NCBI GenBank assembly: GCA_037447605.1
Contig: CM074807.1
Coordinates: 372,001-436,000, forward strand
DNA length: 64,000 nt
Reading direction: 5' to 3'
DNA from: Zygnema circumcarinatum SAG 698-1b
Taxonomy: Eukaryota; Plantae; Zygnematophyceae
In this document: piece after piece, positions 5,009-52,726 of the stretch
How positions within the stretch are numbered: position 1 is the first letter of the stretch
How the letters are laid out: every line of letters starts with the position of its first letter
Program-made: the position numbers and the translations under genes
The notes under the pieces: generated by a model
Seen by the model: only the letters and a program-made list of their open reading frames with translations
What the model was told of the DNA's origin: nothing
The model's database searches: none

Positions 5009-5310
5009 GGCTGCTCCTGCACAGAAACTGAATTCTCGTTCCTTCAATTTTTCGGAGCAGATACTCGGTCAAGACTGAAACTTGAAGGGAGAAATTTTGA
5101 ATCCAAAAATCTCTCACAAACGAACGAATATGAAGAAAAAAAGAGCCAGTTGCAAATCCGTAGCGGCTCAACAGAAAGGGCTAATTGCACAGCCGAAGCC
5201 TTTGCCAAAGAACAATTGGAAGTACTCGGAAGTCTGCACTCAAAGGAGAGCAAGGAAATAGCGCGTTCAGCAAGGCCAATGAGACTGCTCATCTGAAGTA
5301 AGCAGGCATT

Positions 5311-5922
5311 GCAGGAATATGCAGATCGTTCAACAGCATCGAGAATCAGAAAAAACGCGCAAAGAGAACTGCTTCTAAACTTTTCAAACCCTAAGCATCT
5401 GCATGAACCTAAAGGAACTAAACTGAATTGCTTCGACCTACTTCAGGAGAGCCCATGCCCAATCCTCATCCTGCGCAAGGACGAACTGTAGAAGAGGAAG
5501 CCTTAATTTATAGCCCAACCACAAAGCATATATTATGCTCCAGCTAGCATTCCCGTGCTAAGAAAAGTAATGATTTTTCTTAGCAAGGCCAAGCTTGCAC
5601 CTGCAGAGCTTTCCAGCAAACCCTAAAAATGGAACACACTGTTGTCTGCAAACCCTAACTGCATGGAACGCGAGACGAGGCCGATCCGTGTGCGAGTGCT
5701 TATAATTCGCAGTCCGCAGTTCCGTCCCGTTGAACCGAACGGCCATCGCCACACGCGCACAAATAGCCAACCATTTCCAATGACTGCAACCATTGGAGCC
5801 AGCGGTTGGTTGGATCGAGAAATAACGGTTTGCAAACTAAAACCATTGGATCCAATGGTTGATCCAGCCCATGGCCAGTCCAGCGGATGGCCCAAAATAT
5901 TTTCAGCTGCCGTGTCCGTCCG
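5311..5922 (+). promoter_or_regulatory. P module copy 1 (upstream of gene A1; also LSM4 upstream region)
   Basis: Clearly homologous to 9238-9819 and 18281-18863. Contains three AAACCCTA telo-boxes and the palindrome at 5841-5860, and ends at GCCGTGTCCGTCCG. Confidence 0.75.
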
Positions 5923-6375
5923 CGATTGAGCGAGGGTCAGCCGGGCAGCTGAAATTCTTTCCGGTCCTCCCTCGCCGCGAGTACGACAAGCTGCAGCCCC
6001 CCTTCGACGCCTCACGTCACGTCACGCGTACCGTACGCGACCATTCCCCCCACGGCGATGGCGCCACCTGTCCGTCCGTACAGTCCTATCCAAGATTTGA
6101 GATGAGGTAGACGCGCGGCCCACCATTTGGGCCACACCTTTCCCCTCCGGGCACCTCGTGGCCAACCTTGTGCTGCCCGGATGGCGCTAGCCCAATCGCG
6201 GACGCTTACGTCGCACACACGGCAGCCAAACCTATTTCAGGGCTGCCCGAAGCCCACCCCAAGGCCAGGCCCCCCCGCCCGGGCCATCATTTTTCCCTCA
6301 CCTTCTCTCTTCCTCTCTCTCGCTCTCTCTCTCTCTCCCTCTCTCTCTCTCTCTCTCCTGCATCGAGCCACGGCC

Positions 6376-8039
6376 ATGGCTGCCGCGCCCTCGCCCTCCC
6401 TCCGTGAACGCGTGCGCGTGCTGGCGCTGAACCAGCTGCAGGCGCTGCTCTCGTACTGGCGGCTCTACACCGCCGCGCCGGGCGCCGACCGCGACGCCTT
6501 CGCGCAGACGGCCCTCGACTACAGCAAGGCGTACGGCGTGCTCGACCTCCCTCCCCTGCCGCCGNNNNNNNNNNGAGGCGAAAAGAGGCAGCGTCAAGCG
6601 CCTCCGCATGGCGTCGCCTGCTGCGCCCGTCCCCTTCTCTCCCGCTCCCTTCTTCCGCCCGAGGAGGAGAGCCTCCACCTCCACCTCGCCCTCTCTCGCG
6701 GCTCCATCGCTCAAACGGCCCGCGGAGGCGGAGGCGCCTCAGAGACCTTATTTGCTCCCTGTGTTCCAACCCCCCATGGAGCGTTCAGAGAGGGCGGCGA
6801 ATGGTTTTTATCGGCACGAGCGCGTTGAAGCTGGTGAGTATGCATTTAATATGTCGCTTTGCTTGCAAAGGGACGAGTGGGGAATCATTTGATTTCATTT
6901 TCTTATTTTTTTTTTTGAGTTTACATGTTATTTTCACACTCTTTGTTTCTTACACGTTTGTTTTCTGTCAACTTCTGCCAGGTCTGTCGCATGGCATGAG
7001 GATGTTCCTCGGCATTGAAAGTTTCAAGCCAACGCCAAAGGTACTTTTATTCTGCTATTCACTAGGCTAGCTTTGTATGCTTACAGCTTGAAGCAGCTCA
7101 AGGAGCCTTACCCGCTTTGTTTGTCNNNNNNNNNNAAGAGGCCTTACCCGCTTTGTTTGTCTGCTGCAGGAGTCGGCTCTGAAGCATGACAAGTGGATCA
7201 GAAAATCGATCGAGAGTCAAAAACAAGCCGAGGTGAGAATCATCTTTCTCTCTCTCCCTATGTCTCAGTCACTCTCTTTCACTGTCCCTCCCACGCTCTC
7301 CTCTCTTCCTCTTTCTTTCTTGCTTGGAATGTTTATCTGAATGAACCAAAATCAGGCAGAAAGGTAGCGATGGTGCATAATGAAGGGAGATAGTTTGAAA
7401 ACACAATATTCCTTTTGCTGATTTCATTTTCCGAATGTTTTTGTGGCGAATGCGCAGGAAAGAGCCGAGGCAGCTCGGAAGGCCGCCCGCGAGCAAAGGG
7501 TGGCGGAGGAAGGTGCCGAGGAGGAGCAGAAGAACAGGTCCGGAAGGCGCAATGGAAGAAGCCGGCGCTTGTGAAGCTGAGGGTGCGGAGGGCTCGGGGG
7601 CGACTGCTTGGAGGCGTACAAGGAAGTGGCGAGCAAACGGATGAGTTTCCGGAAGCTCAAGCCCAGGTGGGACGACTCGCGGCGGCTGGATGAGCTGTGG
7701 AACGAGAAGGAGACGCGCCGCCAGCTGAGGGATGAATACCGAGAAATCGGCCATCAGCTCCTCTTAATATACGTGAGTCAACGGACCCCGCTCGACCTCT
7801 CCTTGCGTTGTTATCCCCCCTTCGTTTCGCTCTCTCACTCTCTTTGTTTCTATCCTGCTCCCTTCCTCCGTAGCTGAAGCTGCCTCTGTCTGCTTGTCTG
7901 CCTGCTTGCTTGCTTGCAGACGCGCAAAGTCCACGAGTTTGTGAAGGTGGAGGCGGTGAGCGTGGCGGATCGAGTGCTGGAGGAGGCCTGTGCCGTCGCA
8001 GCCATTCGCGGTTGGCCGGAGGCGGCCACAGCGGCGTAG
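6376..8039 (+). CDS. Array gene A, copy 1 (unrecognised protein; gapped and noisy assembly)
   Basis: Same exons as copy 2 (MAAAPSPSLRERVR... to ...GWPEAATAA*), but N-gaps at 6565-6574 and 7126-7135 and an indel-rich patch at about 7540-7670. Confidence 0.65.
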
Positions 8040-8527
8040 AGACACACCACACAGAGGATAGGGCCACTTGCTGCAGGCACACGTTGGATTTTTGCATTCC
8101 TTTTTGATTCGGTGTCCATGCCGGTTGCAGTTCAGTTCGGCCACAGCGGCGTAGAGACACACCACACAGAGGATAGGACCACTTGCTGCAGGCACTTGCT
8201 GGAGTTTTGCATTCTTTTTTTTATTCGGTGTCCATGTCGGTTGCGGTTGAAGTTGCAGTTGCAATTGCAGTTGCAGTTCGGCCACAGCAGCGTAGAGATA
8301 GGCAGAGGATGAGGATGGGGGTGTCGCATTTTTTGAGTCTTGCATTAGTCGGTGTCTATGGCAGTTCCAGTTGCAGTTGCAGTATCAGTTTCACTTTCAG
8401 TTTTAGTGCAGTTTGGTCAACTGGGATAGCGATTTTTTTGCTGCAGCATTTATTATGTTTGCAGTTTCCATCGCTACTCAGTTTTCAAAGTGCAAGTCAA
8501 GAGAGTTGTAACTGAACATGGAACTGG
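8024..8527 (+). repeat. T module (short form) after gene A1; also at about 17067-17570
   Basis: Three reiterated units of about 120 bp starting CGGCCACAGC(G/A)GCGTAGAGA, then a core (GGTGTCGCATTTT...GTAACTGAACATGGA) also found at about 13615-13815, 22690-22890 and 25780-26075. Confidence 0.85.
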
Positions 8528-8793
8528 ACGACCACGAGTGCAGTGAGATGATAGTTTAGCAGCGTCATCCTCAATGAGGACAAGTTTGTTCGTTTTTTCT
8601 TTTTCTCATAAGTTCGGAATTGTTTGTAAACTCAAAACGTGTTGTTGTGCAAACAAAATAAGTCTGTGTGCAAACCATTTGTAAAGCAACAATTTCCATG
8701 ATTTGATGAGCACTATTTTGGCTGATATTTTACATTTACAAGTTCTTTCCTGTAAATGAAATTGGCGGTGGGGTCGACCTTACATCATCAATA

Positions 8794-8897
8794 GGGGGTG
8801 TCAGACTTAAAAAATTTCAGTACGCGTGTGCGGAGTACTTTCGTAACCTTTTTTTTCGTAACGCTTGTCGTAAGATTTTGTTAAGTCTGACACCCCC
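8794..8897. mobile_element. MITE-like 104-bp element with 17-bp TIRs and TA flanks (copy at 17837-17940)
   Basis: TA|GGGGGTGTCAGACTTAA ... TTAAGTCTGACACCCCC|TA: perfect terminal inverted repeats with no coding capacity. Confidence 0.7.
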
Positions 8898-9167
8898 TAA
8901 TATCTAAAATCTTATCGCTGCAAGCTTTGCGGAGAGAAAGCATACGACAGTTGATAGCTCATGTGAGCCATCATATGGACATGGGGCGCTGTTCCCATTC
9001 CATGTTCCACATGAGAGCCATCGATCATATCATGATCGTCATAGCCATTTCGAGACCGCCGTATTGTAGCCCAAGGGACAGTCGCAGATCCATGTGACGC
9101 TGTTCCATGACCTTCACGTGCTACTCCCAATACGGTCACTTGGCGGGCGGTCATGCGCTCCCAGTTC

Positions 9168-9215
9168 TCAGAAACAGTTCAACTTCATTCTTGAATGAAG
9201 TTGAACTGTTTCTGA
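9168..9215. other. Perfect 23-bp-stem hairpin with 2-nt loop (copy at 18211-18258)
   Basis: TCAGAAACAGTTCAACTTCATTC-TT-GAATGAAGTTGAACTGTTTCTGA. Confidence 0.95.
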
Positions 9216-9237
9216 ATGTCTAACATCCGGCAAAAAT

Positions 9238-9819
9238 GCAGCGATATGCAGGTCGTTCAAGAGCATCGAGAATAAGAAAAAACACACAAAGGGGACTGCT
9301 TCTCAACTTTTCAAACCCTAAGCATCTGCATGAACCTTAAAAGGAACTAAACTGTAAATTGAAGTGCAAGGACAAACTGTCGAAGGGGAAGCCTTCAACT
9401 TATAAGCCAAAAACAGAAACAGGCGAAGCATCTATTATGCTCCTCCCAGCATTCCCGTGCTAAGAAAAGTAATGTTTTTACTTAGGCCCTGCTTGCACCT
9501 GCTGAGATTTCCTGCAAACCCTAGAACTGAACACACTGTTGTCTGCAAACCCTAACCGCATGGAACGCGGGACGAGGCCGATCCGTGTGCTAGCGCGTAC
9601 GTGCTGTAGTCCGTAGTTCCGTCCCGTTGAACCGAACGGCCATCGCCTCACGCGCACAGATAGCCAACCATTGCCAATGACTGTAGCCATTTGATCCAAC
9701 GGTTGGTTAGATCGGGAATGAACGGTTTGCAAATCGCAACCATTGGATCCAATGGTTGATCCAACCCATGGCCCGTCCATCGCATGGCCTGACATGTTTT
9801 CGGCTGCCGTGTCCGTCCG
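9238..9819 (+). promoter_or_regulatory. P module copy 2, upstream of gene B1 (copy at 18281-18863)
   Basis: Homologous to 5311-5922, including telo-boxes and the palindrome at 9737-9758. It diverges from P1 immediately after GCCGTGTCCGTCCG. Confidence 0.75.
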
Positions 9820-9976
9820 TGGCAGTCCACAGTCAGTCCTTGCGTGCACGTAGCGGAAGCGCTGTGCAAGTTGCCAACTATAGTTTTGTAGACTCAAACG
9901 CTGTCCTTTTTAGCCAAAAAGTATTTTTGTTGTTGCATTGATGTTTGTCACATGGCGGTAAATTTGTTGCTGCTGC

Positions 9977-10011
<35 letters not shown>

Positions 10012-10147
10012 GTCAAAGGTGTTATGGTCAGACAGTTTTAAGCCAATGGTTGGCTGTTCACAATGATCCGACCATTGCAATGGATGCGAGCCATCCAACC
10101 ATTGCCAGTGGTTCGCAACCATTGCGGTCCGCCATGTGCCCACCCCC

Positions 10148-10178
<31 letters not shown>

Positions 10179-10604
10179 GCGCGGACCGCGTCCGACCGCC
10201 CCAACGACCGCGGACCGCCCTCAGGCCCTCCCTCGCGCCCTTTTGAAGGGGCGGGTCCGCCCGTGCGATCGCGCGCCGCACCACTCCGCCCCTGCGCGCC
10301 GACATGGCCGCTGGGTGGTCGGTGGCACGTGCAGAGAGGCTGCCACGCGGCAGCTGCATGCAATCTCGTTCTATGGCGCTCGCTTCCGTTCTCGTGCAAG
10401 GCCGCGCCGCGTGGCGCCGCTCGACCAGTTTGTGCGTACGGCCGGCCTGCATGCCCGCCGCGTGGCCTGATCCGGACAAGTTCATGTCGGTGACCTTGGC
10501 CACGTCCGCTCGCGATTGGCGGCGAGTCGGTGGCGCGCGGCCAAATTTTCAGGTACGAAGAAACACGTGTCGCGTTCTCCGTAGTCGTGTCAGACCGCAC
10601 TACA

Positions 10605-10860
10605 GCGGCGGCGAATCGGTCGCCGTCACGTGGCATATAAGGGGTTAAGTGGGTCGGCGCTTCACGACGCGCAGTACGGCGGCGAATCAGTCGCCGCCAC
10701 GTGGCAAATAGGGGGTTAGTCGGACGGCGCGTGACGACGCGTGGCAGCGAACCGGTCGCCAGCACGTGGCATATATGGGCTAGGGGGGTGGCGCATCGCG
10801 ACGCGCAGTTTGGCAGCGGCGAGTTGGTGGGCGCCACGTGAGGTTTAGGGTTAGGGGGGC
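10605..10860 (+). promoter_or_regulatory. Four degenerate repeats of about 70 bp, each carrying a G-box/ABRE (copy at about 19651-19915)
   Basis: CACGTGGC at 10627, 10698 and 10763 and CACGTG at 10835. TATAAAA at about 10976 lies upstream of the gene B ATG at 11113. Confidence 0.7.
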
Positions 10861-11112
10861 GTCTCGGCGCACCTGCGGGGGGCGGCGCCCTCTTGGACGC
10901 GCGCGCCGGCCCCTTCGCGGGGCGGGCCCTGGTCTCGAGCGTTCGCAGTTTGGCGCCTTGCGCGGGGCCCTTCCCTATAAAAGGGGAGGCGGGGGAGCCC
11001 TCCGTCATTCAGCTCTGTGCTTCTGCCCTGCGCTTCTGCCCTGCGCTTCTGCCTTGCGCTTCTGCCCTGAGCTCCTACTTTCTTTTACTTTTTTTTTTCA
11101 GTTGCCTTCAAA

Positions 11113-12892
11113 ATGGCTGCATCGCTCTTCAGCGCAGCGACTAATTTGGCGGCTCGCCGTCCCTGGGGAGTGCTCGCCAATGCGAGTAAGTTTTTTACTC
11201 CCTTTTTCTCTGTTTAGCTATTTGAGAGAGAGGGGGGAAGCAAGGATAGAGAGCATGTCTTTTTTGCTTTCTAGTTCGTGTTCCTGATTTTTGCTCAAAA
11301 TTGTTTGCAGGATCGGCGTGGTCTTCCGTGAAGGCGGAATCTCCTATTAGCATCAATGCGCTCGTCACTAAAATGGGCGGCCTCCAGATTTCGCCATTAA
11401 GTAAGTTATTTTACTTTCAAACTTCATTATTTCTTGTCTTTTTCCCTTCTTCCTTTTTCCTCCCTTTTGTTTTTGTCTGCACTTTGCACTTTATCAACGC
11501 CTAACTTTCGTTAATGTTGGTGGGGTTGCAGAGCCGCCCTCAGCGTTTTGCATGTCTCCGCCTTCCGCTACAGAGATGCTCAACGACATCTCTTTACTCT
11601 GTCGCCAAGTGGCGGCAATCGAGCTCGATGACGTCATGCGAACTCCAACTGCCAGTAAGATTCTTCCTTTCTTTAGTCGATGTTTTCTGTTTTTTTTTCT
11701 TGCATCAACGTTTTGTTGATTATATCTCTTCCAAATGCAACTATTTTTTGCTGTGCTCTTTAATTTTTAACAACATTTTTTTGTTCTCTTGCTTGCTTGC
11801 TTGCTGCAGGTGATGTGAGGGGTCAGACTGCTCCTGCTCCTCCTCCCCCTCCTCTTCCTCTCGCGGCGATTGATCTGCGTGGCGTCAAGCGATCTCGAAC
11901 TGAGAGTAAGTAATCTTTTCTCTTTAGTCAGTAGTTTTATTTTTTTTCTTTTCTTTTCTTTTCCTTGCATCAACGTTTTATTGATTATTTCTCTTCCAAA
12001 TGCAACCTATTTTTTGCTGTGCTTTTTAATTTTTAACAACGTTTTTTTGTTCTCTTGCTTGCTTGCTTGCTTGCTGCAGGTGCTGTGAGGGGTCAGACTG
12101 CTGCTGCTCCTCCTCCCCCTCCTCTTCCTCTCGCGGCGATTGATCTGCGTCCCGTCAAGCGAACTCGTACTGCGAGTACGTAATCTTTTCTCTTTAGTCA
12201 GTGGTTTTTTTTTTCTTTCTTTTGTTTTCTTGCATCAACGTTTTGCTGTTCATTCTCTTCCAATTGCAACTTCCTTTTGCTCTGCTTCTAAATTTTTAAT
12301 AACTTTTCCTTTCTCGTGCTTGCTGCAGGTGATGTGAGGGCAAGCCCGGCCTGCAGTGGACAGATTACTCAGATTACTCCCCCTCCTCCCCCCCCCCTCC
12401 CCCTTCGCTCTCTCTCCTCTTAAACGATTTGCGTCCGCGCGGCCTGCCGCCCCTCGGCGCATCTCCGCCGTCCGATGGCCGTCCCGGCGCGGCCTTGGCC
12501 GTCCGATCGCGAAGGGTCCAGGGCCCATCCTCGCCCGCCGTGTGGCTCGCACCGCCGCGTTTTGGGCGTCGGTATTTGCGGTCGAGCCACGTGGCGACCC
12601 CCCCGCAGGCAGCGCTCGCCCGCCCTCCAGCTGGTGGCCCGGCCTCTCTCAAACCGCCCTCCCGCCCTGGCTGCCTCTCCCCCCTCGCTGGCCGGGGGGG
12701 TGGTGGACCTAGACGCCGGATGCAGGGGTAGATGCACACCTCACCGGAGCTCATTCACTCATTCACTCATTCGATGTGCGGGGGGGTGTACAAGGGATTG
12801 CGGCTCGTTGACCGAGAGAGAGGGAGAGAGAGAGAGCAAGATTTGTGTTGAGCTTCTCATTACATGAATCAGGTGGCAGTTTCGTGGTGTAG
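11113..12892 (+). CDS. Array gene B, copy 1 (unrecognised Pro-rich protein; 3' end uncertain)
   Basis: GT-AG exons 11113-11185, 11311-11400, 11532-11654, 11810-11905, 12080-12175 and 12329 onward join in frame (MAASLFSAATNLAARRPWGVLANARSAWSSVKAESPISINALVTKMGGLQISPLKPPSAFCMSPPSATEMLNDISLLCRQVAAIELDDVMRTPTA...). The frame in exon 6 breaks in a C-homopolymer in this copy but is open in copy 2. Confidence 0.6.
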
Positions 12893-13439
12893 AGGGAAGC
12901 AAAGACATAGGAGGTGGAGCCGGCTGTATGGGAACGGATCATCGGAGTTGAGGGCAGCACCACATCATTGCCAAGGTGAAACAGCTTCAAGCAGAAGATT
13001 TGCCGCATCAGCAACTCTGCAAAGGGGAAGAAGTTGGGAAAATAACTCTGCAAAATGTGGAGGAGTCGAGCGGAGTTTCCCAGTCTTCTTCTATCGAACG
13101 TTTCAGCACAGATTGTTTGGAGGCTGAGGATTGGCACACTGTGGTGGCTATCGACGAGGAGACGAAATGATCGTCCATTGAGAAGATACTGAGAGAGGAC
13201 TTGTACAAGCATGAAGCCTCCCTTTGTCGGAAAAAGGCGAGGAGGGACAGGTCGCCTCGCGTGGCTCACAATCAGAGCGAGCATCGCATTGGAGTCGGAA
13301 ATGAGTCCGGTCGAAGCTGCAGCGGAGAGGTTAGAAGGCGAGTCAGAGCACTTGGCTGCGAGTCCGCTCTGCCCGTGGCAGGTTGCAGCAGTGGTCTTAG
13401 TTTTTTGTCTTTTAAGTCCTTTTTTTAGTCCTTTTTTTT

Positions 13440-14480
13440 AGTCGGTGTCGACGTCAGCTGCAGGTCCAGTTTCAGTTCCAGTTTAGTTTGGTCACACTGA
13501 GTGAGTGCGATTTGCAGCAGTCAAGGTTCTTTTTTTACTCGGTGTCCACGTCAGCTGCGTAGAGACAGGCTGGTAGAGACAGCTGCGTAGCGGCGTAGAG
13601 ACAGGCAGGATGGAGGTGTCGCATTTTTAGAGTCTTGCATTAGTCAGTGTCTATGGCAGTTCCAGTTGCAGTTTTAGTTTTAGTTGCAGTTCTAGTGCAG
13701 TTTGGTCAACTGGGATGGCGATTTTTTTGCTGCAACATTTATTATGTTTGCAGTTTCCATCGCTACTCCTCAGTTTTCAAAGTGCAGTCAAGAGCGTTGT
13801 AACTGAACATGGATCTGGCTGGCTGACCAGCATGTTTCATTTTTCATTTTTAATTCAGATTCTGATCTTGTCATCTCCTTGTTCCGAAAAGTGTGTCAAG
13901 GTTCAACCTTTTGAACGTGAACTGTGTTTTAGCCCATAATTCTTTCTTTTTGCTCTCCTCCCCTCCCAAGGCAGAAGGAGAAGCCTTTCAGCTTCTCTCT
14001 GAATCGGTTCCAGTGGAAGGGCCAAAGAAAGAAAGTCTGCGGGCAGTCCAGTCCAGTCCGTTCTTTTCGATGAACGAAAATCCACGACTCGAGTGACCTG
14101 GAGCTTGTGCAACCAACCATTGGATCATTGATTCGCGGAACACCCCACATTGCCAATCCTTGCAACCAATCATAGGCTGGGGACCCATCTAACGACAGCT
14201 CAGCTCAGCTTAGTCAGCCAGCCAATGAATGCAACCATTGGACCATTGATTCCCGACCCACCCAACCATTGCCAACGTTTGTAACCATTGCCAACGTTTG
14301 TAACCATTGCCAACGTTTGTAACCATTGCCAACGTTTGCAACCGTTGGCTGGAGATCCAGCCAACCATTGTCAATGACTGCAACCATTGGATCCAATGGT
14401 TGATTGGGTCGAGAATCAATGGTTTGAGAAGTCGCAACGATTGCCAATGTTTGAAGCCATTGGCTAGCTACCCAGCCAAA
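13440..14480 (+). repeat. T module (long form) after gene B1; homologous blocks at about 22513-23540 and 25624-26560
   Basis: Shares the T core with the gene A 3' regions, then continues through ...GGAAGGGCCAAAGAAAGAAAGTCTGCGGGCAGTCC... into the AACCATTG repeat field. Confidence 0.85.
14264..14343 (+). repeat. 19-bp minisatellite AACCATTGCCAACGTTTGT x4 (x3 at 23340-23400)
   Basis: Read directly; contiguous units without spacers. Confidence 0.95.
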
Positions 14481-14997
14481 CATTGCCAATTTCTGCAACC
14501 AGTGGATCCAACGGTTGGCTGGATCGGGAATCAACGGATTGCAAATCGCAACCATTGGATCCAATGGTTGATCCAACGCATGGCCCAAAATATTTTCAAC
14601 AGCCGTGTCCGTCCGCGATTGAGCGAGGGTCAGCCGGGCAGCTGAAATTCTTTCCGGTCCTCCCTCGCCGCGAGTACGACAAGCTGCAGCCCCCCTTCGA
14701 CGCCTCACGTCACGTCACGCGTACCGTACGCGACCATTCCCCCCACGGCGATGGCGCCACCTGTCCGTCCGTACAGTCCTATCCAAGATTTGAGATGAGG
14801 TAGACGCGCGGCCCACCATTTTGGGCCACACCTTTCCTCTGCGGGCAGCTGGAGGCCAACATTGAGCTGCCCGGATGGCGCTCGCCCAATCACGGACGCT
14901 TACGTCGCACACAAGGCAGCCAAAACTATTTCAGGGCTGCCCGTGGCCCACCCCAAGGCCAGGCCCCCCCGCCCGGGCCATCATTTCTCCCTCACTC

Positions 14998-15039
<42 letters not shown>

Positions 15040-15093
15040 GCGCTCTCTCCCTCTCTCTCTCTCTCTGTCGCTCTCCTGCATCGAGCCACGGCC

Positions 15094-17082
15094 ATGGCTG
15101 CCGCGCCCTCGCCCTCCCTCCGTGAGCGCGTGCGCGCGCTGGCGCTGAACCAGCTGCAGGCGCTGCTCTCGTACTGGCGGCTCTACACCGCCCCTCTGGG
15201 CGCCGACCGCGACGCCTTCGCGCAGACGGCCCTCGACTACAGCAAGGCGTACGGCGTGCTCGACCTCCCTCCCCTGCCGCCGCCTGTCAAGGAGCCCTCT
15301 GCGAGTCTCGAGGACTCCCACATGAGGAAAAGGGCCGCCGTTGAAGACCGCCTGCGCGAGCTCTCCCTCCCTCAGTTGCGCGCGTTGTTGTACACATGGC
15401 AGTTGTGCCCCAATCGCCTCCCCCTCGATCGCCACGCCTTCCTCCAAGTGGCGCTGGGATACGCGCACCTCCACAAAGTCGTGGAGCTCCCTCCGCTGCC
15501 GCCGCCACATGCCCCGGCCGCCGCCTCTCTCGCAAGGGCCGAGGAGGAGGCAGCGCCAAGGAAGCGGCGGCTTGAGGAGGAGGAGGAGGAGGAGGAGGAG
15601 GAGGCGGGCGAGTGCGCCGAGAGGGAGGCGAAAAGAGGCAGCGTCAAGCGCCTCCGCATGGCGTCGCCTGCTGCGCCCGTCCCCTTCTCTCCCGCTCCCT
15701 TCTTCCGCCCGAGGAGGAGAGCCTCCACCTCCACCTCGCCCTCTCTCGCGGCTCCATCGCTCAAACGACCCGCGGAGGCGGAGGCGCCTCAGAGACCTTA
15801 TTTGCTCCCTGTGTTCCAACCCCCCATGGAGCGTTCAAAGAGGGCGGCGAATGGTTTTTATCAGCACGAGCGCGTTGAAGCTGGTGAGTATGCATTTAAT
15901 ATGTCGCTTTGCTTGCAAAGGGACGAGTGGGGAATCATTTGATTTCATTTTTTTTTTTTTCATTTTACATGTTATTTTCACACTCTTGTTTCTTACACGT
16001 TTGTTTTCTGTCAACTTCTGCCAGGTCTGTCGCATGGCATGAGGATGTTCCTCGGCATTGAAAGTTTCAAGCCAACGCCAAAGGTACTTTTTCTTATGCT
16101 ATTCACTAGGCTAGCCTTGTATGCTTACAGCTTGAAGCAGCTCAAGGAGCCTTACCCCCTATATTTGTCTGCTGCAGGAGTCGGCTCTGAAGCATGACAA
16201 GTGGATCAGAAAATCGATCGAGAGTCAAAAACAAGCCGAGGTGAGAATCATCTTTCTCTCTCTCCCTATGTCTCAGTCACTCCCTTTCACTGTCCCTCCC
16301 ACGCTCTCCTCTCTTCCTCTTTNNNNNNNNNNCCCACGCTCTCCTCTCTTCCTCTTTCTTTCTTGCTTGGAATGTTTATCTGAATGAACCAAAATCAGGC
16401 AGAAAGGTAGCGATGGTGCATAATGAAGGGAGATAGTTTGAAAACACAATATTCCTTTTGCTGATTTCATTTTCCGAATGTTTTTGTGGCGAATGCGCAG
16501 GAAAGAGCCGAGGCAGCTCGGAAGGCCGCCCGCGAGCAAAGGGTGGCGGAGGAAGGTGCCGAGGAGGAGCGGAAGAGACAGGTCCGGAAAGCAATGGAAG
16601 AAGCCGACGCCGCGAAGCTGAAGACTGCGGAGGAGCTCGGGAGCGACTGCTTGGAGGCGTACAAGGAAGTGGCGAGCAAACGAGATGAGTTTCGGAAGCT
16701 CAAAAGCGAGTGGGACGACTCGCGGCGGCTGGATGAGCTGTGGAACGAGAAGGAGACGCGCCGCCAGCTGAGGGATGAATACCGAGAAATCGGCCATCAG
16801 CTCCTCTTAATATACGTGAGTCAACGGACCCCGCTCGACCTCTCCTTGCGTTGTTATCCCCCCTTCGTTTCGCTCTCTCACTCTCTTTGTTTCTATCCTG
16901 CTCCCTTCCTCCGTAGCTGAAGCTGCCTCTGTCTGCTTGTCTGCCTGCTTGCTTGCTTGCAGACGCGCAAAGTCCACGAGTTTGTGAAGGTGGAGGCGGT
17001 GAGCGTGGCGGATCGAGTGCTGGAGGAGGCCTGTGCCGTCGCAGCCATTCGCGGTTGGCCGGAGGCGGCCACAGCGGCGTAG
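15094..17082 (+). CDS. Array gene A, copy 2: 448-aa protein of unknown function (two helical repeats of about 60 aa, poly-E, basic clusters, coiled-coil-like C-terminus)
   Basis: Exons 15094-15883, 16025-16083, 16178-16240, 16501-16815 and 16963-17082 total 1347 nt. All introns are GT-AG with consistent phases, giving one uninterrupted frame. Confidence 0.8.
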
Positions 17083-19020: not shown

Positions 19021-19055
<35 letters not shown>

Positions 19056-20165
19056 GTCAAAGGTGTTATGGTCAGACAGTTTTAAGCCAATGGTTGGCTG
19101 TTCACAATGATCCGACCATTGCAATGGATGCGAGCCATCCAACCATTGCCAGTGGTTCGCAACCATTGCGGTCCGCCATGTGCCCACCCCCCCCCGCCGC
19201 CGCCGCCGCCGCCGCCGCCGCGCGCGGACCGCGTCCGACCGCCCCAACGACCGCGGACCGCCCTCAGGCCCTCCCTCGCGCCCTTTTGAAGGGGCGGGTC
19301 CGCCCGTGCGATCGCGCGCCGCACCACTCCGCCCCTGCGCGCCGACAGCCCGCTGGGTGGTCGGTAGCACACGATGCAGAGAAGGCTGCCACGCGGCAGC
19401 TGAATGCAATCTCGTTCTATGGCGCTCGCTTCCGTTCTCGTGCAAGGCCGCGCCGCGTGTCGCCGCTCGACCAGTTTGTGCGTACGGCCGGCCTGCATGC
19501 CCGCCGCGTGGCCTGATCCGGACAAGTTCATGTCGGTGACCTTGGCCACGTCCGCTCGCGATTGGCGGCGAGTCGGTGGCGCGCGGCCAAATTTTCAGGT
19601 ACGAAGAAACACGTGTCGCGTTCTCCGTAGTCGTGTCAGACCGCACTACAGCGGCGGCGAATCGGTCGCCGTCACGTGGCATATAAGGGGTTAAGTGGGT
19701 CGGCGCTTCACGACGCGCAGTACGGCGGCGAATCAGTCGCCGCCACGTGGCAAATAGGGGGTTAGTCGGACGGCGCGTGACGACGCGTGGCAGCGAACCG
19801 GTCGCCAGCACGTGGCATATATGGGCTAGGGGGGTGGCGCATCGCGACGCGCAGTTTGGCAGCGGCGAGTTGGTGGGCGCCACGTGAGGTTTAGGGTTAG
19901 GGGGGCGTCTCGGCGCACCTGCGGGGGGCGGCGCCCTCTTGGACGCGCGCGCCGGCCCCTTCGCGGGGCGGGCCCTGGTCTCGAGCGTTCGCAGTTTGGC
20001 GCCCTTGCAGGGCCCTTCCTCAAAGAAAGGGGAGGCGGGAGCCCACTAAATTAATTTCAGCTCCATGCTTCTGCCTGCGCGCTTCTGCCTGCGCGCTTCT
20101 GCCTTGCGCGCTTCTGCCCCTGAGCTCCCTACTTTCTTTTTACTTTTTTTTCAGTTGCCTTCAAA

Positions 20166-21965
20166 ATGGCTGCATCGCTCTTCAGCGCAGCGACTAATTT
20201 GGCGGCTCGCCGTCCCTGGGGAGTGCTCGCCAATGCGAGTAAGTTTTTTACTCCCTTTTTCTCTGTTTAGCTATTTGAGAGAGAGGGGGGAAGCAAGGAT
20301 AGAGAGCATGTCTTTTTTGCTTTCTAGTTCGTGTTCCTGATTTTTGCTCAAAATTGTTTGCAGGATCGGCGTGGTCTTCCGTGAAGGCGGAATCTCCTAT
20401 TAGCATCAATGCGCTCGTCACTAAAATGGGCGGCCTCCAGATTTCGCCATTAAGTAAGTTATTTTACTTTTCAAACTTCATTATTTCTTGTCTTTTTCCC
20501 TTCTTCCTTTTTCCTCCCTTTTTGTTTTTGCATGCACCCACTTTGCACTTTATCAACATAACTTTACGGGTATGTTAGCGGGTGGGGTTGCAGAGCCACC
20601 GCCCTCAGCGTTTTGCGTAATACCGCCTTCGCTGCGGGGTAACCTCAGCGACATATAACATACCGTAGCCAGAAGTGGCGGCAATCGAGAAAACTCGATG
20701 ACGTCATGCGAACTCCAACTGCCAGTAAGATTCTTCCTTTCTTTAGTCGATGTTTTCTGTTTTTTTTTCTTGCATCAACGTTTTGTTGATTATATCTCTT
20801 CCAAATGCAACTATTTTTTGCTGTGCTCTTTAATTTTTAACAACATTTTTTTGTTCTCTTGCTTGCTTGCTTGCTGCAGGTGATGTGAGGGGTCAGACTG
20901 CTCCTGCTCCTCTCCCCTCCTCTTCGCGGGTGATCTGCGGCTGGCGTCCAGCTTGATACCGAGACTGAGAGTAAGTAATCTTTTTCTCTTTTAGTCGGTA
21001 GGTTTTATTTTTCTTCGCTTCGCTGCGCATCAGCAGTTTTCGGTGATTGTTTCTCTTTGATGCAACCTATTTTTTGCTGTGCTTTTTAATTTTTAACAAC
21101 GTTTTTTTGTTCTCTTGCTTGCTTGCTTGCTTGCGGGTTTGGCGAGTTCGGGCTTCTAACGCTCATCTCCCCTCTGCTCCTTCCTCTCGCGGCGTTAGGT
21201 CTGCGTCCCGTCAGAAGCGAACTCGTACTGCGAGTACGTAATCTTTTCTCTTTAGTCAGTGGTTTTTTTTTTCTTTCTTTTGTTTTCTTGCATCAACGTT
21301 TTGCTGTTCATTCTCTTCCAATTGCAACTTCCTTTTGCTCTGCTTCTAAATTTTTAATAACTTTTCCTTTCTCGTGCTTGCTGCAGGTGATGTGAGGGCA
21401 AGCCCGGCCTGCAGTGGACAGATTACTCCCCCTCCTCCCCCTCCCCCTCCCCCTCCCCCTCCTCCCCCTCCCCCTTCGCTCTCTCTCCTCTTAAACGATT
21501 TGCGTCCGCGCGGCCTGCCGCCCTCGGCGCATCTCCGCCGTCCGATGGCCGTCCCGGCGCGGCCTTGGCCGTCCGATCGCGAAGGGTCCAGGGCCCATCC
21601 TCGCCCGCGTTGGCGACCCGCGCACTTGCGCGTTTTGGGCGTCGTGGCTGCGCGGTCGAGCCACGTGGCGACCCCCCCGCAGGCAGCGCTCGCCCGCCCT
21701 CCAGCTGGTGGCCCGGCCTCTCTCAAACCGCCCTCCCGCCCTGGCTGCCTCTCCCCCTCGCTGGCCGGGGGGGTGGTGGACCTAGACGCCGGATGCAGGG
21801 GTAGATGCACACCTCACCGGAGCTCATTCACTCATTCACTCATTCGATGTGCGGGGGGGTGTACAAGGGATTGCGGCTCGTTGACCGAGAGAGAGGGAGA
21901 GAGAGAGAGCAAGATTTGTGTTGAGCTTCTCATTACATGAATCAGGTGGCAGTTTCGTGGTGTAG
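20166..21965 (+). CDS. Array gene B, copy 2 (several indel-rich patches)
   Basis: Same start and exons 1-2 as copy 1. Exons 3-5 carry scattered indels; exon 6 is open (DVRASPACSGQITPPPP...LLLNDLRPRG...VVDLDAGCR). Confidence 0.5.
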
Positions 21966-24146
21966 AGGGAAGCAAAGACATAGGAGGTGGAGCCGGCTGT
22001 ATGGGAACGGATCATCGGAGTTGAGGGCAGCACCACATCATTGCCAAGGTGAAACAGCTTCAAGCAGAAGATTTGCCGCATCAGCAACTCTGCAAAGGGG
22101 AAGAAGTTGGGAAAATAACTCTGCAAAATGTGGAGGAGTCGAGCGGAGTTTCCCAGTCTTCTTCTATCGAACGTTTCAGCACAGATTGTTTGGAGGCTGA
22201 GGATTGGCACACTGTGGTGGCTATCGACGAGGAGACGAAATGATCGTCCATTGAGAAGATACTGAGAGAGGACTTGTACAAGCATGAAGCCTCCCTTTGT
22301 CGGAAAAAGGCGAGGAGGGACAGGTCGCCTCGCGTGGCTCACAATCAGAGCGGAGCATCGCATTGGAGTCGGAAATGAGTCCGGTCGAAGCTGCAGCGGA
22401 GAGGTTAGAAGGCGAGTCAGAGCACTTGGCTGCGAGTCCGCTCTGCCCGTGGCAGGTTGCAGCAGTGGTCTTAGTTTTTTGTCTTTTAAGTCCTTTTTTT
22501 AGTCCTTTTTTTTAGTCGGTGTCGACGTCAGCTGCAGGTCCAGTTTCAGTTCCAGTTTAGTTTGGTCACACTGAGTGAGAGCGATTTGCAGAATTCAAGG
22601 TTCTTTTTTTACTCGGTGTCCACGTCAGCTTCGTAGAGACAGGCTGGTAGAGACATCTGCGTAGCGGCGTAGAGACAGGCAGGATGGAGGTGTCGCATTT
22701 TTAGAGTCTTGCATTAGTCAGTGTCTATGGCAGTTCCAGTTGCAGTTTTAGTTTTAGTTGCAGTTCTAGTGCAGTTTGGTCAACTGGGATGGCGATTTTT
22801 TTGCTGCAACATTTATTATGTTTGCAGTTTCCATCGCTACTCCTCAGTTTTCAAAGAGTGCAGTCAAGAGCGTTGTAACTGAACATGGATCTGGCTGGCT
22901 GACCAGCATGTTTCATTTTTCATTTTTAATTCAGATTCTGATCTTGTCATCTCCTTGTTCCGAAAAGTGTGTCAAGGTTCAACCTTTTGAACGTGAACTG
23001 TGTTTTAGCCCATAATTCTTTCTTTTTGCTCTCCTCCCCTCCCAAGGCAGAAGGAGAAGCCTTTCAGCTTCTCTCTGAATCGGTTCCAGTGGAAGGGCCA
23101 AAGAAAGAAAGTCTGCGGGCAGTCCAGTCCAGTCCGTTCTTTTCGATGAACGAAAATCCACGACTCGAGTGACCTGGAGCTTGTGCAACCAACCATTGGA
23201 TCATTGATTCGCGGAACACCCCACATTGCCAATCCTTGCAACCAATCATAGGCTGGGGACCCATCTAACGACAGCTCAGCTCAGCTTAGTCAGCCAGCCA
23301 ATGAATGCAACCATTGGACCATTGATTCCCGACCCACCCAACCATTGCCAACGTTTGTAACCATTGCCAACGTTTGTAACCATTGCCAACGTTTGCAACC
23401 GTTGGCTGGAGATCCAGCCAACCATTGTCAATGACTGCAACCATTGGATCCAATGGTTGATTGGGTCGAGAATCAATGGTTTGAGAAGTCGCAACGATTG
23501 CCAATGTTTGAAGCCATTGGCTAGCTACCCAGCCAAACATTGCCAATTTCTGCAACCAGTGGATCCAACGGTTGGCTGGATCGGGAATCAACGGATTGCA
23601 AATCGCAACCATTGGATCCAATGGTTGATCCAACGCATGGCCCAAAATATTTTCAACAGCCGTGTCCGTCCGCGATTGAGCGAGGGTCAGCCGGGCAGCT
23701 GAAATTCTTTCCGGTCCTCCCTCGCCGCGAGTACGACAAGCTGCAGCCCCTTCGACGCCTCGTCACGTCACGCGTACCGTACGCGACCATTCCACGGCGA
23801 TGGCGCCACCGCAATAAAATCGTACGATTCCTATCAAGATTTGAGGATGAGGTAGACGCGCGGCCCTACGACACGGGCCCTGCTTTCCTCTGCGGGCAAT
23901 GGGGCCAACATTGAGCTGCCCGGATGGCGCTCGCCAATCCACGGACGCTTACCGTCGCACACAAGGCAGCCAAAAGAGCTTGCTATTTCAGGGCTGCCGT
24001 GGCTACAAGGCCAAGGCCCCCGCCCCGGGCCATATCATTTCTCCCCTCACTCACCTTCTCTCTCTCTCTCTCTCTCTCTACTCTCTCTGGCGCTCTCTCT
24101 ACCTCTCTCTCTCTCTCTATGCGCTCTCCTGCATCGAGCCACGGCC

Positions 24147-25639
24147 ATGGCTGCCGCGCCCTCGCCCTCCCTCCGTGAACGCGTGCGCGTGCTGGCGCTG
24201 AACCAGCTGCAGGCGCTGCTCTCGTACTGGCGGCTCTACACCGCCGCGCCGGGCGCCGACCGCGACGCCTTCGCGCAGACGGCCCTCGACTACAGCAAGG
24301 CGTACGGCGTGCTCGACCTCCCTCCCCTGCCGCCGCCTGTCAAGGAGCCCTCTGCGAGTCTCGAGGACTCCCACATGAGGAAAAGGGCCGCCGTTGAAGA
24401 CCGCCTACGCGAGCTCGCCCTCCCTCAGTTGCGCGCGTTGTTGTACACATGGCAGTTGTGCCCCAATCGCCTCCCCCTCGATCGCCACGCCTTCCTCCAA
24501 GTGGCGCTGGGATACGCGCACCTCCACAAAGTCGTGGAGCTCCCTCCGCTGCCGCCGCCACATGCCCCGGCCGCCGCCTCTCTCGCAAGGGCCGAGGAGG
24601 AGGCAGCGCCAAGGAAGCGGCGGCTTGAGGAGGAGGAGGAGGAGGAGGAGGAGGAGGAGGAGGAGGCGGGCGAGTGCGCCGAGAGGGAGGCGAAAAGAGG
24701 CAGCGTCAAGCGCCTCCGCATGGCGTCGCCTGCTGCGCCCGTCCCCTTCTCTCCCGCTCCCTTCTTCCGCCCGAGGAGGAGAGCCTCCACCTCCACCTCG
24801 CCCTCTCTCGCGGCTCCATCGCTCAAACGACCCGCGGAGGCGGAGGCGCCTCAGAGACCTTATTTGCTCCCTGTGTTCCAACCCCCCATGGAGCGTTCAA
24901 AGAGGGCGGCGAATGGTTTTTATCAGCACGAGCGCGTTGAAGCTGGTGAGTATGCATTTAATATGTCGCTTTGCTTGCAAAGGGACGAGTGGGGAATCAT
25001 TTGATTTCATTTTTTTTTTTTTCATTTTACATGTTATTTTCACACTCTTGTTTCTTACACGTTTGTTTTCTGTCAACTTCTGCCAGGTCTGTCGCATGGC
25101 ATGAGGATGTTCCTCGGCATTGAAAGTTTCAAGCCAACGCCAAAGGTACTTTTTCTTATGCTATTCACTAGGCTAGCCTTGTATGCTNNNNNNNNNNGAG
25201 CGACTGCTTGGAGGCGTACAAGGAAGTGGCGAGCAAACGAGATGAGTTTCGGAAGCTCAAAAGCGAGTGGGACGACTCGCGGCGGCTGGATGAGCTGTGG
25301 AACGAGAAGGAGACGCGCCGCCAGCTGAGGGATGAATACCGAGAAATCGGCCATCAGCTCCTCTTAATATACGTGAGTCAACGGACCCCGCTCGACCTCT
25401 CCTTGCGTTGTTATCCCCCCTTCGTTTCGCTCTCTCACTCTCTTTGTTTCTATCCTGCTCCCTTCCTCCGTAGCTGAAGCTGCCTCTGTCTGCTTGTCTG
25501 CCTGCTTGCTTGCTTGCAGACGCGCAAAGTCCACGAGTTTGTGAAGGTGGAGGCGGTGAGCGTGGCGGATCGAGTGCTGGAGGAGGCCTGTGCCGTCGCA
25601 GCCATTCGCGGTTGGCCGGAGGCGGCCACAGCGGCGTAG
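24147..25639 (+). CDS. Array gene A, copy 3 (gap at 25188-25197 removes exon 3 and part of exon 4)
   Basis: Exon 1 is intact and has 13 Glu in the poly-E run versus 10 in copy 2. The end of exon 4 and exon 5 match copy 2. Confidence 0.7.
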
Positions 25640-26897
25640 AGACACACCACACAGAGGATAGGGCCACTTGCTGCAGGCACACGTTGGATTTTTGCATTCC
25701 TTTTTGATTCGGTGTCCATGTCAGCTTCAGTTCAGTTCGGCCACAGCGGCGTAGAGATAGGCAGAGGATGAGGATGGGGGTGTCGCATTTTTTGAGTCTT
25801 GCATTAGTCGGTGTCTATGGCAGTTCCAGTTCCAGTTGCAGTTGCAGTTCAGCCACGGTGTCGTGGAGACAGGCAGGAGGGCGGTGTCGCATTTTTGCAG
25901 TCTTACATTAGTCGGTGTCTATGCCAGTTCCACTTTCAGTTGCAGTTGCAGTTTTAGTGCAGTTTGGTCAACTGGGATAGCGATTTTTTTGCTGCAACAT
26001 TTATTATGTTAGCAGTTTCCATCGCTACTTCCCAGTTTTCAAAGTGCAGTTCAAGAGTGTTGTAACTGAACATGGAACTGGCTGGTTGACCAGCATGTTT
26101 CATTTTTAGTTCAGATTTTGATCTTGTCCTCTCCTTGTTCTGAAAAGTGTGTAAAAGTTAAAACCTTTTGAACGTGAACTGTGTTTTTGCCCATAATTCT
26201 TTCTTTCTGCTCTCCTCCCCTCTCCTGGCAGAAGAAGCCTTTCAGCTTCTCTCCGAACCGGTTGAAGTGGAAGGGCCAAAGAAAGAAAGTCTGCGGGCAG
26301 TCCAATCCGTTCATTTCGATGAAAGAAAATACACGACTCGAGTGACAGCCGCTCGCTGACTTGGAGATTGTGTAACCAACCATTGGATCATTGATTCGCG
26401 GAAAACACCCCTCATTGCCAATGCTTGCAACCAACCACTGGCTGGCGACCCAGCCAACCATTGCCAAATGACTGCAACTATTGGATCCAATGATTGGTTG
26501 GATCAAGAATCAGCGGTTGACAAATCGCAACCATTGCCAATGTTTGCAACCAGTGGACCATTGACCTTTTGTATGACGTCAGAAAGGTGCAAACCTAGGA
26601 TAAACTCGCTCCAAGCCTGCTTTAAAATGTCCCTTGGGTTCGCACCAATAGGGGTAGGCGGCCCGTGGAGCACACTTGCCCACGTCACAGCGTCGCAGAA
26701 GGTTCCGGTTGCTTTTGCTCCTCTGCGAACTGTACTACAGACATCAGAGGGTGGGAGTGGGAGAGGGAGAGGAGGGAAGCTGGAACTCAATATTTCCGCT
26801 TAGAATCTCAGAATTCTCTGTATATTATTGTTATTGCATGTGGGCCAAGGAGTAAACTGCTCAATCCGAGAGCAAGTTGAAGACCATAAGGCGTTTA

Positions 26898-32800: not shown

Positions 32801-33426
32801 ACTTGAACTGCATGCAGCTTCACTATGTCTGGTAGAGCCTGTTCTCATGTAGCTTACCGAACTGTTTTGTAATACAAGTAATGGGTAATTATCTGAAGAG
32901 CAAGAGCTCTACGCAAACGTGAGGGGTTACCAGATATCTTCTTGTATAGGATTCATTACTAAATCTACTCATCTACTACTATGTGGGTCTATTTTCTACT
33001 TATCTACCTCTGCTATATCTCTCTCGTACTCTCATTATCAGATATGGGATCTAGTTAGGATTTTTCGTGGACTCTATTTTCTGGCCAAACGCTCACAAAT
33101 TCGGTACCTTCTGGTGGGGATGTCTGAACAGAAGGTGAAGGAGACAGGGAAGAGATTCCGAGAGACTGTATTGGCCCTTGGAGGAGGGCGGGCTCCTCTT
33201 GAGGTATGGACAGTACCTTCAATTGAGGTCGTTCTCTCTCAATTACTGAGCATGCTGCTTGAAGGGCTAGATTACTCCCAGCTCTTTTCTGGGTTCCAGT
33301 TGGTTGACCATATAGTCTGACGCGTAGTTTATTCTATGACAGGTGTTTAAGGACTTCCGAGGAAGGGAGCCTTCTACTGAGTCCTTGCTGCGGCACAGTG
33401 GCCTCCTTGCAACTGCGGCTGCTTGA
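26898..33426 (+). CDS. OOP: Organellar oligopeptidase A (M3A zinc metallopeptidase) with N-terminal transit peptide
   Basis: Exons give [60 protein letters not shown] (HEXXH), [33 protein letters not shown]|[10 protein letters not shown] and [17 protein letters not shown]. Confidence 0.95.

Positions 33427-36590: not shown

Positions 36591-52726
<16,136 letters not shown>

Follow-up and report, generated by a model that had tools for sequence, protein, structure and literature searches.

A tandem array of two unrelated genes between the LSM4-like and OOP-like genes of Zygnema circumcarinatum is probably a local segmental duplication

Two unrelated genes, A and B, alternate between the LSM4 and OOP genes of Zygnema circumcarinatum SAG 698-1b, and our results suggest that the locus is a local segmental-duplication array and not a cassette system, a reading to which we assign a probability of roughly 0.6. 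The window, that is the whole stretch of DNA analysed, comprises 64,000 nt of CM074807.1 (GCA_037447605.1; forward strand, 372,001–436,000), and all coordinates refer to it (Table 1). The flanking genes are divergent as the initial annotation had described, since Pfam matches define an LSM-domain gene (minus strand) on the left and a Peptidase_M3 gene (plus strand) on the right. The LSM4-like gene has a probable ATG at 5009–5007 followed by an intron, and an RGG-rich tail is visible in its frame translations. No Rfam or tRNA matches were found.

Table 1. Features of the array and its flanks (window coordinates)
Feature	Position	Strand	Remarks
LSM4-like gene, left flank	3190..5009	-	exon 4103-4294 is Pfam LSM, E=7e-16
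P1, full P (body and 115-bp-type tail)	5311..5922	+	adjoins LSM4 5' end
Inverted-repeat pair, 33-nt arms, 85% complementary, 222 nt apart	5917..6204	.	
A1	6377..8039	+	gaps 6565-6574 (exon 1) and 7126-7135 (intron 2); indel-rich patch 7500-7700
T after A1	8023..8527	+	~three ~113-bp units, then T core 8312-8527
X spacer, solely between A and B	8528..9237	.	second copy 17571-18280
P2, full P upstream of B1	9238..9819	+	RNA depth 0-5
B1 transcript	10317..13810	+	gene model and RNA joints/depth
T within B1 3' UTR	13431..13818	+	degenerate units, then T core 13607-13818; B2 copy ~22505-22894
Long T and P-tail-type repeats	13819..14473	+	copies 22895-23530, 26082-26560
P tail upstream of A2	14474..14615	+	A3 copy 23531-23672
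A2, most complete	15094..17082	+	predicted exons 15094-15883, 16025-16083, 16178-16240, 16501-16815, 16963-17082
P3	18281-18863		second full P upstream of B
B2 coding region	20166..21480	+	frameshifted as assembled
A3	24147..25639	+	gap 25188-25197 deletes exon 3 and exon 4 start
T after A3: core, long T, P-tail-type repeats	25623..26560	+	reaches OOP upstream region
Peptidase M3 (OOP-like) gene, right flank	26898..33000, end approximate	+	Pfam Peptidase_M3 on 32307-32435; ATG 26898

Self-BLAST, a repeat search and alignments showed that the module map and the breakpoints claimed in the initial annotation are present in the assembly. The proposed self-comparison of 5–27 kb, carried out with self-BLAST, gave A-B-A-B-A units as assembled: 7290–16125 matched 16333–25187 at 96.3% over 8.9 kb, and the repeat unit of ~9.05 kb is arranged head-to-tail with a constant period of ~9043–9075. 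Each insert sits between common homologous flanks, P upstream and T downstream, and A and B proved as unrelated as had been supposed, with no similarity outside T in DNA, tblastx and protein comparisons. A P module of ~600 bp precedes A1, B1 and B2, and its last ~140 bp alone precede A2 and A3. By self-BLAST, 5310–5425 plus 5475–5922 correspond to 9237–9354 plus 9366–9819 and to 18280–18863 (84–90%), and P2 differs from P3 by a single indel. All P copies part directly after GCCGTGTCCGTCCG in the alignment, and the left arm of the 33-nt inverted repeat begins exactly where P and A part. A T core of ~215 bp lies 3' of all five genes (8312–8527, 13607–13818 at 90%, 17355–17570, 22681–22894, and ~25862–26081 at 84–86%). 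A1 and A2 leave the T alignment directly after ...GTAACTGAACATGGAACTGG, at 8527 and 17570 respectively, and A3 continues into a long T like that after B (25862–26452 compared with 13594–14187, 86%).

The product predicted from A2 has 448 residues, and no relatives of A were found among 1.84 billion representative proteins; both A and B look lineage-restricted, the protein search having covered A only. For B1, a 5'-UTR exon at ~10317–10545 is followed by coding exons 11113–11185, 11311–11400, 11532–11654, 11810–11905, 12080–12175 and 12329–12423 (190 residues) and a 3' UTR reaching ~13800, and RNA confirmed the GT..AG joints 10545/11095, 11185/11311, 11400/11532 and 12175/12329. As assembled, exon 3 of B2 has 131 nt (compared with 123) and a stop, exon 4 has 91 nt (compared with 96) and exon 5 has lost its acceptor.

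The T core is a real common transcript end. RNA depth in run X20 was 1170 at 13601–13800 and then 0, placing the end of the B transcript at ~13800, and an A-type variant of the core at 13717 accounted for 4011/5296 in X7 and 1937/3233 in X8, both spliced-RNA runs. The T units after A1 open with the last codons and the stop of A, and the T of B retains GCGGCGTAGAGACAGG ~1 kb beyond the B stop, which suggests that T is native to A. The initial annotation had proposed shared promoter and terminator shells; the terminator half stood and the promoter half did not. P was rejected as a promoter shell: RNA contigs of B begin at 10317/10319, ~490 bp beyond the P end (9819), RNA depth over P was 0–5 compared with 300–6000 over B, and A-type transcripts exist although A2 and A3 have no P body. 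RNA at 14601–15000, upstream of A2, was at background level.

Instead of a promoter, P is probably a copy of the LSM4 upstream region, because it adjoins the LSM4 5' end and each of its copies retains three telo-box-like AAACCCTA motifs, together nine of the 14 in the window. The P tail is a 115-bp palindrome-rich repeat, of which 9662–9774 matches 14474–14586 and 23531–23643 (89%), with a weaker copy at 26452–26536. Direct repeats of this type stand at the unit borders and before OOP (5765–5922, 14321–14615, 23378–23672 and 26377–26556), and the motif CAACCATTG occurs 33 times, always inside 5787–26536, compared with 0.44 expected by chance. Since DNA-run depth reached 2927 at 14201–14400 compared with ~150 nearby, and contigs extend from the P tail into sequence absent from the window, copies of the P tail exist at other genomic loci. 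Depths of 110–142 for the P body and 374 for the T core, compared with ~150–167 for B, are the levels expected from the array alone; these figures come from assembled contigs at a likeness of at least 95%, so that P or T copies elsewhere that are older and more divergent would go undetected.

Flanking direct repeats are the classic substrate for unequal crossing-over, and many plant and animal gene clusters have arisen by this process with later gene conversion. The earlier idea that the array amplified by unequal recombination agrees with the direct P-tail repeats bordering the units. From the sequence we infer the following order of events and direction of cargo replacement. The ancestral locus would have read LSM4 ← P – A – T (core plus long) – P-tail repeats → OOP, with P as the LSM4-proximal upstream region, ending in the 115-bp repeat also found upstream of OOP and elsewhere. 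Unequal crossing-over between the two P-tail blocks, which have the same orientation, would have duplicated A, and would explain why long T and only the end of P stand before A2 and A3; their P tail, which lacks 17 nt common to P1 and P2 and follows long T, fits a hybrid repeat left by such an event. A separate tandem duplication would have copied 5311–8527, from the start of P to the A transcript end, and the junction would contain 0.7 kb of filler (X). The end of this stretch is at most ~50 nt away from the transcript end, taken from the equivalent position in B where RNA depth fell to 0. In the redundant copy, ~3.6 kb of foreign DNA may then have replaced the A body, so that P and the T end alone remained, and would have brought B together with a promoter and 5'-UTR exon of its own and the greater part of its 3' UTR. 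The A-B unit may have duplicated again, with gene conversion keeping the copies alike.

Like other tandem segmental duplications, the array is head-to-tail with the same repeat at each unit border, and its edge copies are the most diverged (84–90%) and its inner copies nearly identical. Unlike them, its unit contains two unrelated genes, one of them lying within an older, incomplete copy of the flanks of the other, and an extra replacement event is thus needed. The exchange of the A body for B exactly between P and T counts against the segmental-duplication reading as a single unexplained event, no donor locus for B was found, and whether A or B came first can be settled only with an outgroup. 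If this reading holds, the locus would be a neat case of nested tandem duplication, in which a young gene can gain the upstream region and the transcript tail of another gene; such inheritance would be one route to ready-made 3' ends for lineage-restricted genes.

How many units are real depends on the assembly, whose gaps we tested against the paralogous copies. The flanks of gap 6565–6574 correspond to 15282 and 15625 in A2, so that 342 nt (114 codons) are absent, and they would be in frame if joined. Those of gap 7126–7135 and of gap 16323–16332, which falls in intron 3 of A2, overlap by 21 and 25 nt respectively; these two are therefore unmerged overlaps with nothing missing. Gap 25188–25197 joins intron 2 of A3 to the middle of exon 4, with 515 nt absent including exon 3. 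Farther along the window, 44051–45231 equals 45243–46422 (99.9%) on both sides of gap 45232–45241, a proven false duplication. Differences between the array units are clumped and indel-rich, with one such patch upstream of A3 (23750–24100), and the assembly here is too poor for separating gene-conversion tracts from errors. As assembled there are three copies of A and two of B, although the distinct junctions require A-B-A only; because artefacts cannot explain P1-A, A-T-X, B-T-longT-A and A-T-longT-OOP all together, A-B-A is real at the least.

A tentative but serious alternative is that assembly error produced the second A-B unit and the true order is LSM4-P-A-T-X-P-B-T-longT-A-T-longT-OOP. 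The contigs 7136–16322 and 16333–25187, of about one period each, would then be one locus rendered twice and joined at gap 16323–16332; the pattern of shared flanks would stay and the five-member array would go. Homotype false duplications, about a read length in size and located at contig boundaries, are a recognised class of error (PMC8081667), and the array resembles them as a near-identical repeat across an N gap, with a 1.18-kb example in the same window. The overlapping flanks at 7126 and 16323 agree with such an origin, as do stretches of 1.6–2.6 kb over which units 1 and 2 do not differ, the dense, frame-breaking indel patches that hold the remaining differences, as from raw-read gap filling, and the fact that A-B-A accounts for every distinct junction type. 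Against this, DNA run X1 contains variant contigs at 9101/9107 in X (64 compared with 96) and at 13999 in long T (54 compared with 127) which are absent from both assembled copies, suggesting two slightly different real copies. The ratio of A-type to B-type T-core depth (174:142, or 1.2) is also nearer 3:2 than the 2:1 of A-B-A. Both observations come from noisy contig depths that have no single-copy control, and they favour three A and two B weakly. The distinct junctions set the array apart from homotype false duplications by demanding a real A-B-A at least. B2 and parts of both A1 and A3 are damaged or missing in the assembly only, a warning for annotation, and long reads are therefore needed before copy-number or pseudogene calls are trusted.

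The remaining explanations assign P and T a role of their own. It is unlikely that they have been kept by selection as working regulatory modules of a co-expressed functional pair, with P as a telo-box upstream activating region and T as a 3'-end processing or stability module. The telo-box motifs of P1 and P2 are conserved despite the overall identity of 84–90%, the T core forms part of both transcripts and stops close to their end, and B is strongly expressed. However, A and B were not co-expressed in X20, where T-core depth was 1388 for the B type and 0 for the A type; the P body is missing before A2 and A3, B-specific promoter DNA lies in the ~0.5 kb between P and the start of B, and conservation of P and T is not above that of neighbouring non-coding paralogous DNA (84–90%). 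We also think it very unlikely that P and T serve as portable homology arms, or as an expression shell, between which whole genes are exchanged by gene conversion. An interchangeable-cargo system, as initially proposed, was not borne out: there is a single cargo difference, and inverted or terminal repeats linking P and T, a mobile-element protein and, at a likeness of at least 95%, an excess of P-body or T-core DNA depth were all looked for and not found.

That P...T represents a gene-carrying, non-autonomous mobile element of the Pack-MULE, Helitron, CACTA or similar type which acquired different cargo, as a non-autonomous element was also suggested initially, appears highly improbable. Pack-MULEs and Helitrons are gene-carrying non-autonomous transposons, and the array shares with them common end modules around different host-derived sequence; some T-like and P-tail-like stretches adjoin other sequence elsewhere. 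Unlike these elements, the array has no terminal inverted repeats (only internal palindromes and small hairpins were found, none linking P and T), and P begins TGCAGG/TGCAGC, unlike the TC or similar ends of Helitrons. There are no target-site duplications at 5310/5311, 9237/9238 or the T ends and, at a likeness of at least 95%, no detected dispersed copies; the known copies all lie side by side in tandem, P-body and T-core depths do not exceed array expectation, and the cargo consists of complete genes that have introns and a promoter of their own. Spacer ORFs gave no Pfam hits, in agreement with the earlier remark that no transposase or recombinase was visible, and neither an element protein nor a nuclease or recombinase gene was found among them. 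The HML/MAT/HMR cassettes of yeast and the VSG cassettes of trypanosomes carry unrelated central segments between shared upstream and downstream homology. We give hardly any credence to the idea that the flanks are homology arms of such a recombination cassette, or that A and B form a selfish driver-plus-antidote module spreading through amplification. The layout does recall unrelated Y segments flanked by common X and Z sequences, the two genes seem restricted to the lineage, and copy number looks unstable. However, A-type and B-type transcripts both exist and both genes are transcribed in place, unlike an arrangement of silent donors and a single expression site; the nuclease is lacking, a single arrangement was observed, and nothing in the data bears on drive.

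Portable P/T arms, if real, would make this a nuclear cassette-exchange locus in a streptophyte alga comparable to yeast MAT and trypanosome VSG, and the locus would gain far greater weight only if P/T pairs bracket other genes elsewhere in the genome. A few RNA contigs link T-like stretches (13461–13682) to sequence outside the window, so that some of T may belong to other transcripts as well. The X spacer contains a hairpin element (8792–8899) and a palindrome (9168–9215), and the long T region contains a 19-bp unit repeated 4.4 times at 14264–14347 and a 115-bp unit repeated 2.1 times at 14321–14557.

Self-comparison of the window showed that the array is built on a repeat unit of ~9.05 kb (7290-16125 = 16333-25187, 96.3% identity over 8.9 kb), in which genes A (three copies) and B (two copies) are assembled in the order A-B-A-B-A between the LSM-domain gene LSM4 and the Peptidase_M3 gene OOP. 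The ~600-bp upstream module P stands before A1, B1 and B2 (P1, P2 and P3 respectively). P1 and P2 were 84-90% identical by the same comparison, with a single indel as the sole difference between P2 and P3, and in the alignments every P copy diverged directly after GCCGTGTCCGTCCG. All five genes are followed by the ~215-bp core of the downstream module T. In A1 and A2 the T alignment breaks off right at the end of GTAACTGAACATGGAACTGG, where a 710-bp spacer, X, takes over, and T is continued by a ~650-bp 'long T' in B1, B2 and A3. The module map and breakpoints described in the initial annotation are thus present in the assembly.

Positions of the array modules, flanking genes and assembly gaps
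Feature	Position	Strand	Remark
P1, P module before A1	5311-5922		self-comparison
P2, P module before B1	9238-9819		self-comparison
P3, P module before B2	18281-18863		self-comparison
Last ~140 bp of P, before A2	14474-14615
Last ~140 bp of P, before A3	23531-23672
Left flank, LSM-domain gene		minus
Right flank, Peptidase_M3 gene		plus
Gap in A1 exon 1	6565		342 nt (114 codons) hidden or deleted
Gap in A3	25188		515 nt hidden or deleted, exon 3 included
Gap	7126		unmerged overlap of 21 nt
Gap	16323		unmerged overlap of 25 nt

A 33-nt inverted-repeat pair occupies 5917-6204 (also 14610-14900). Its left arm begins exactly at the point after P where A-type sequence parts from B-type, and the pair may be a small element or a breakpoint hotspot that forms hairpins. 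Two features of the X spacer look like small foldback or MITE-type insertions: a ~108-bp hairpin element at 8792-8899 (copy 17835-17942), whose 23-nt arms (TAGGGGGTGTCAGACTTAAAAAA) are 96% complementary, and, separate from it, a perfect palindrome of 23+23 nt at 9168-9215 (copy 18211-18258).

P and T had been proposed to be promoter and terminator shells shared by the two genes. We examined 9001-15000 with contigs assembled from one DNA run (X1) and from three runs that contain RNA (X20, X7 and X8). The RNA contigs confirmed the B introns by their GT..AG joints and revealed an exon of the 5' UTR at ~10317-10545 that is joined to 11095 by splicing; contigs of two independent runs started at 10317 and 10319, placing the start of the B transcript ~490 bp beyond where P ends. 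The RNA depth in X20 was 0-5 over P compared with 300-6000 over B. Upstream of A2 (14601-15000) the depth was at background level, which puts the start of A near the ATG and well beyond the P tail. Neither A nor B has P as its core promoter, and this half of the proposal did not hold. The terminator half was borne out. The depth of the B 3' UTR was 1170 in the 13601-13800 bin and then fell to 0, showing that the T core is a true transcript end. X20 lacked the A-type variant of the T core (13717 G>A), which was abundant in X7 and X8, so A is expressed, its transcript also ends in T, and its expression does not accompany that of B in every sample. T is a transcript tail common to A and B. In X8, one contig carried at 13819 a T-core variant (…TTCAAGAGTGTAGCTAAACATGGAA) that differs from all five assembled copies, before running into long T; this may reflect an additional copy or a strain variant.

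The start of P lies directly upstream of the LSM4 5' end. Three AAACCCTA motifs are retained in every P copy, together nine of the 14 in the window (1.9 expected by chance). The simplest reading makes P the LSM4 upstream region, with P2 and P3 as its copies. The 115-bp unit that makes up the P tail is organized around a perfect 22-bp palindrome, CAACCATTGGATCCAATGGTTG; units of this type occur at every unit border and before OOP, all in direct orientation, and upstream of the B start the motif recurs in a shorter cluster that lacks the 115-bp unit. All 33 occurrences of CAACCATTG fall within the array. The P-tail unit is also present at other loci, as shown by a DNA depth of 2927 at 14201-14400 (~150 nearby) and by contigs that extend from the P tail into sequence not present in the window. 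As for T, it is a small minisatellite, made up after A of ~113-bp units opening with A's last codons and stop codon, and GCGGCGTAGAGACAGG is retained in the T of B about 1 kb past B's own stop. Judged from these sequence features, T would have belonged to A first.

A system of interchangeable cargo or mobile cassettes had been suggested for this locus, and we found no evidence for one. P and T have neither inverted termini in common nor family-specific termini, and the alignments revealed no target-site duplication at the module borders. The spacer reading frames matched no transposase, recombinase or reverse transcriptase, in agreement with the initial annotation. Rfam and tRNA scans of the window were empty, and hence no known RNA gene is hidden in P. 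Counted from contigs at 95% likeness or more, the P body had a DNA depth of 110-142 and the T core one of 374, the level expected from the array alone. As a caveat, a few RNA contigs joined T-like stretches to sequence outside the window.

The assembly itself has to be considered in reading the array. Units 1 and 2 showed zero differences over stretches of 1.6-2.6 kb and dense indel-rich patches elsewhere, which frameshift B2, scramble the sequence upstream of A3 and break up A1 exon 4. Such clumping is better explained by gap filling with uncorrected long reads than by biological divergence. Since most differences between copies of a gene fall in these error-like patches, dN/dS between copies was abandoned. 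Elsewhere in the window, 44051-45231 equals 45243-46422 (1181 bp at 99.9%) directly on either side of an N gap (45232-45241), so that one exon-bearing segment of a neighbouring gene is shown twice. Contig ends left unmerged have almost certainly produced a false duplication here, a known class of error at contig boundaries (PMC8081667). The second A-B unit could be a false duplication of the same kind, with A-B-A as the real order: contigs 7136-16322 and 16333-25187 are each about one period long, and the distinct junctions demand no more than A-B-A. However, X1 contains variant contigs at 9101/9107 and 13999 that are in neither assembled copy, and the ratio of A-type to B-type T-core depth was 174:142; both weakly favour two real units. 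Inside or beside a large BEACH/kinase gene region, 47350-51050 runs from a (TC)n tract through ~3.4 kb of near-pure (AT)n to (TC)n again, with a GC of 0.001 at 48001-50000.

We class the locus as a nested tandem segmental duplication, an already known kind of structure. Amplification by unequal recombination, as proposed previously, is plausible given the direct P-tail repeats at the unit borders; the accompanying idea of an interchangeable-cargo or mobile cassette system is without evidence. The ancestral state may have been a single A between P on one side and T, long T and P tail on the other. Crossing-over between two direct P-tail blocks would have duplicated A, which would be why A2 and A3 are preceded by long T and the P tail only; the tail before A2 and A3 lacks 17 nt common to P1 and P2, which fits such an exchange. 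A separate tandem duplication of 5311-8527, a stretch that opens at the edge of P facing LSM4 and stops within ~50 nt of the A transcript end, would have left X as filler at its junction, and in the redundant copy the A body would have been overwritten by ~3.6 kb containing B and a promoter of its own. This replacement is the one unexplained event that the proposed history requires, and no donor locus for B came to light. A may have preceded B at the locus.

A2 is the most complete A copy, with five exons encoding 448 aa. For exon 1 (263 aa), no Pfam family was found, and the ESM Atlas gave at most weak SAP/HeH-like leads with scores of 0.77 or less. A word-index search, swamped by low-complexity words, gave no match, and an exhaustive HMMER search of 1.84 billion representative proteins returned no relative. 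The single-sequence AlphaFold model of residues 1-140 had a pLDDT of 45.8, too poor for structure search. Exact-product look-ups of three A open reading frames and a nearby single-exon gene retrieved no record. We rejected A and B as diverged paralogues, as sensitive blastn, tblastx and blastp matched the T units only; the absence of homology noted initially was upheld at the DNA, tblastx and protein levels outside those units.

The B1 product is a Pro-rich protein of 190 aa, and its gene holds three copies of an exon-plus-intron unit (period 270, 2.4 copies by Tandem Repeats Finder). Within intron 1, a 71-bp unit is present in 2.5 copies at 10607-10860, with telomere-like GGTTTAGGGTTAGGGG after it; the DNA depth doubles at 10801-11000, where one contig extends into sequence absent from the window. 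At 12388, just downstream of the last B1 intron, contigs of one DNA and three RNA-containing runs are 5 letters shorter in a C-rich tract than the assembly, suggesting either a small error in the assembly or a difference between strains. In the 3' UTR, the DNA and RNA depth of the 13001-13200 bin was 2-4 times that of neighbouring bins, and from 13028 contigs of three runs join different upstream sequence (TGGAGGAGAAGCAGCGG...), indicating that this piece of the B 3' UTR is also in another expressed locus.
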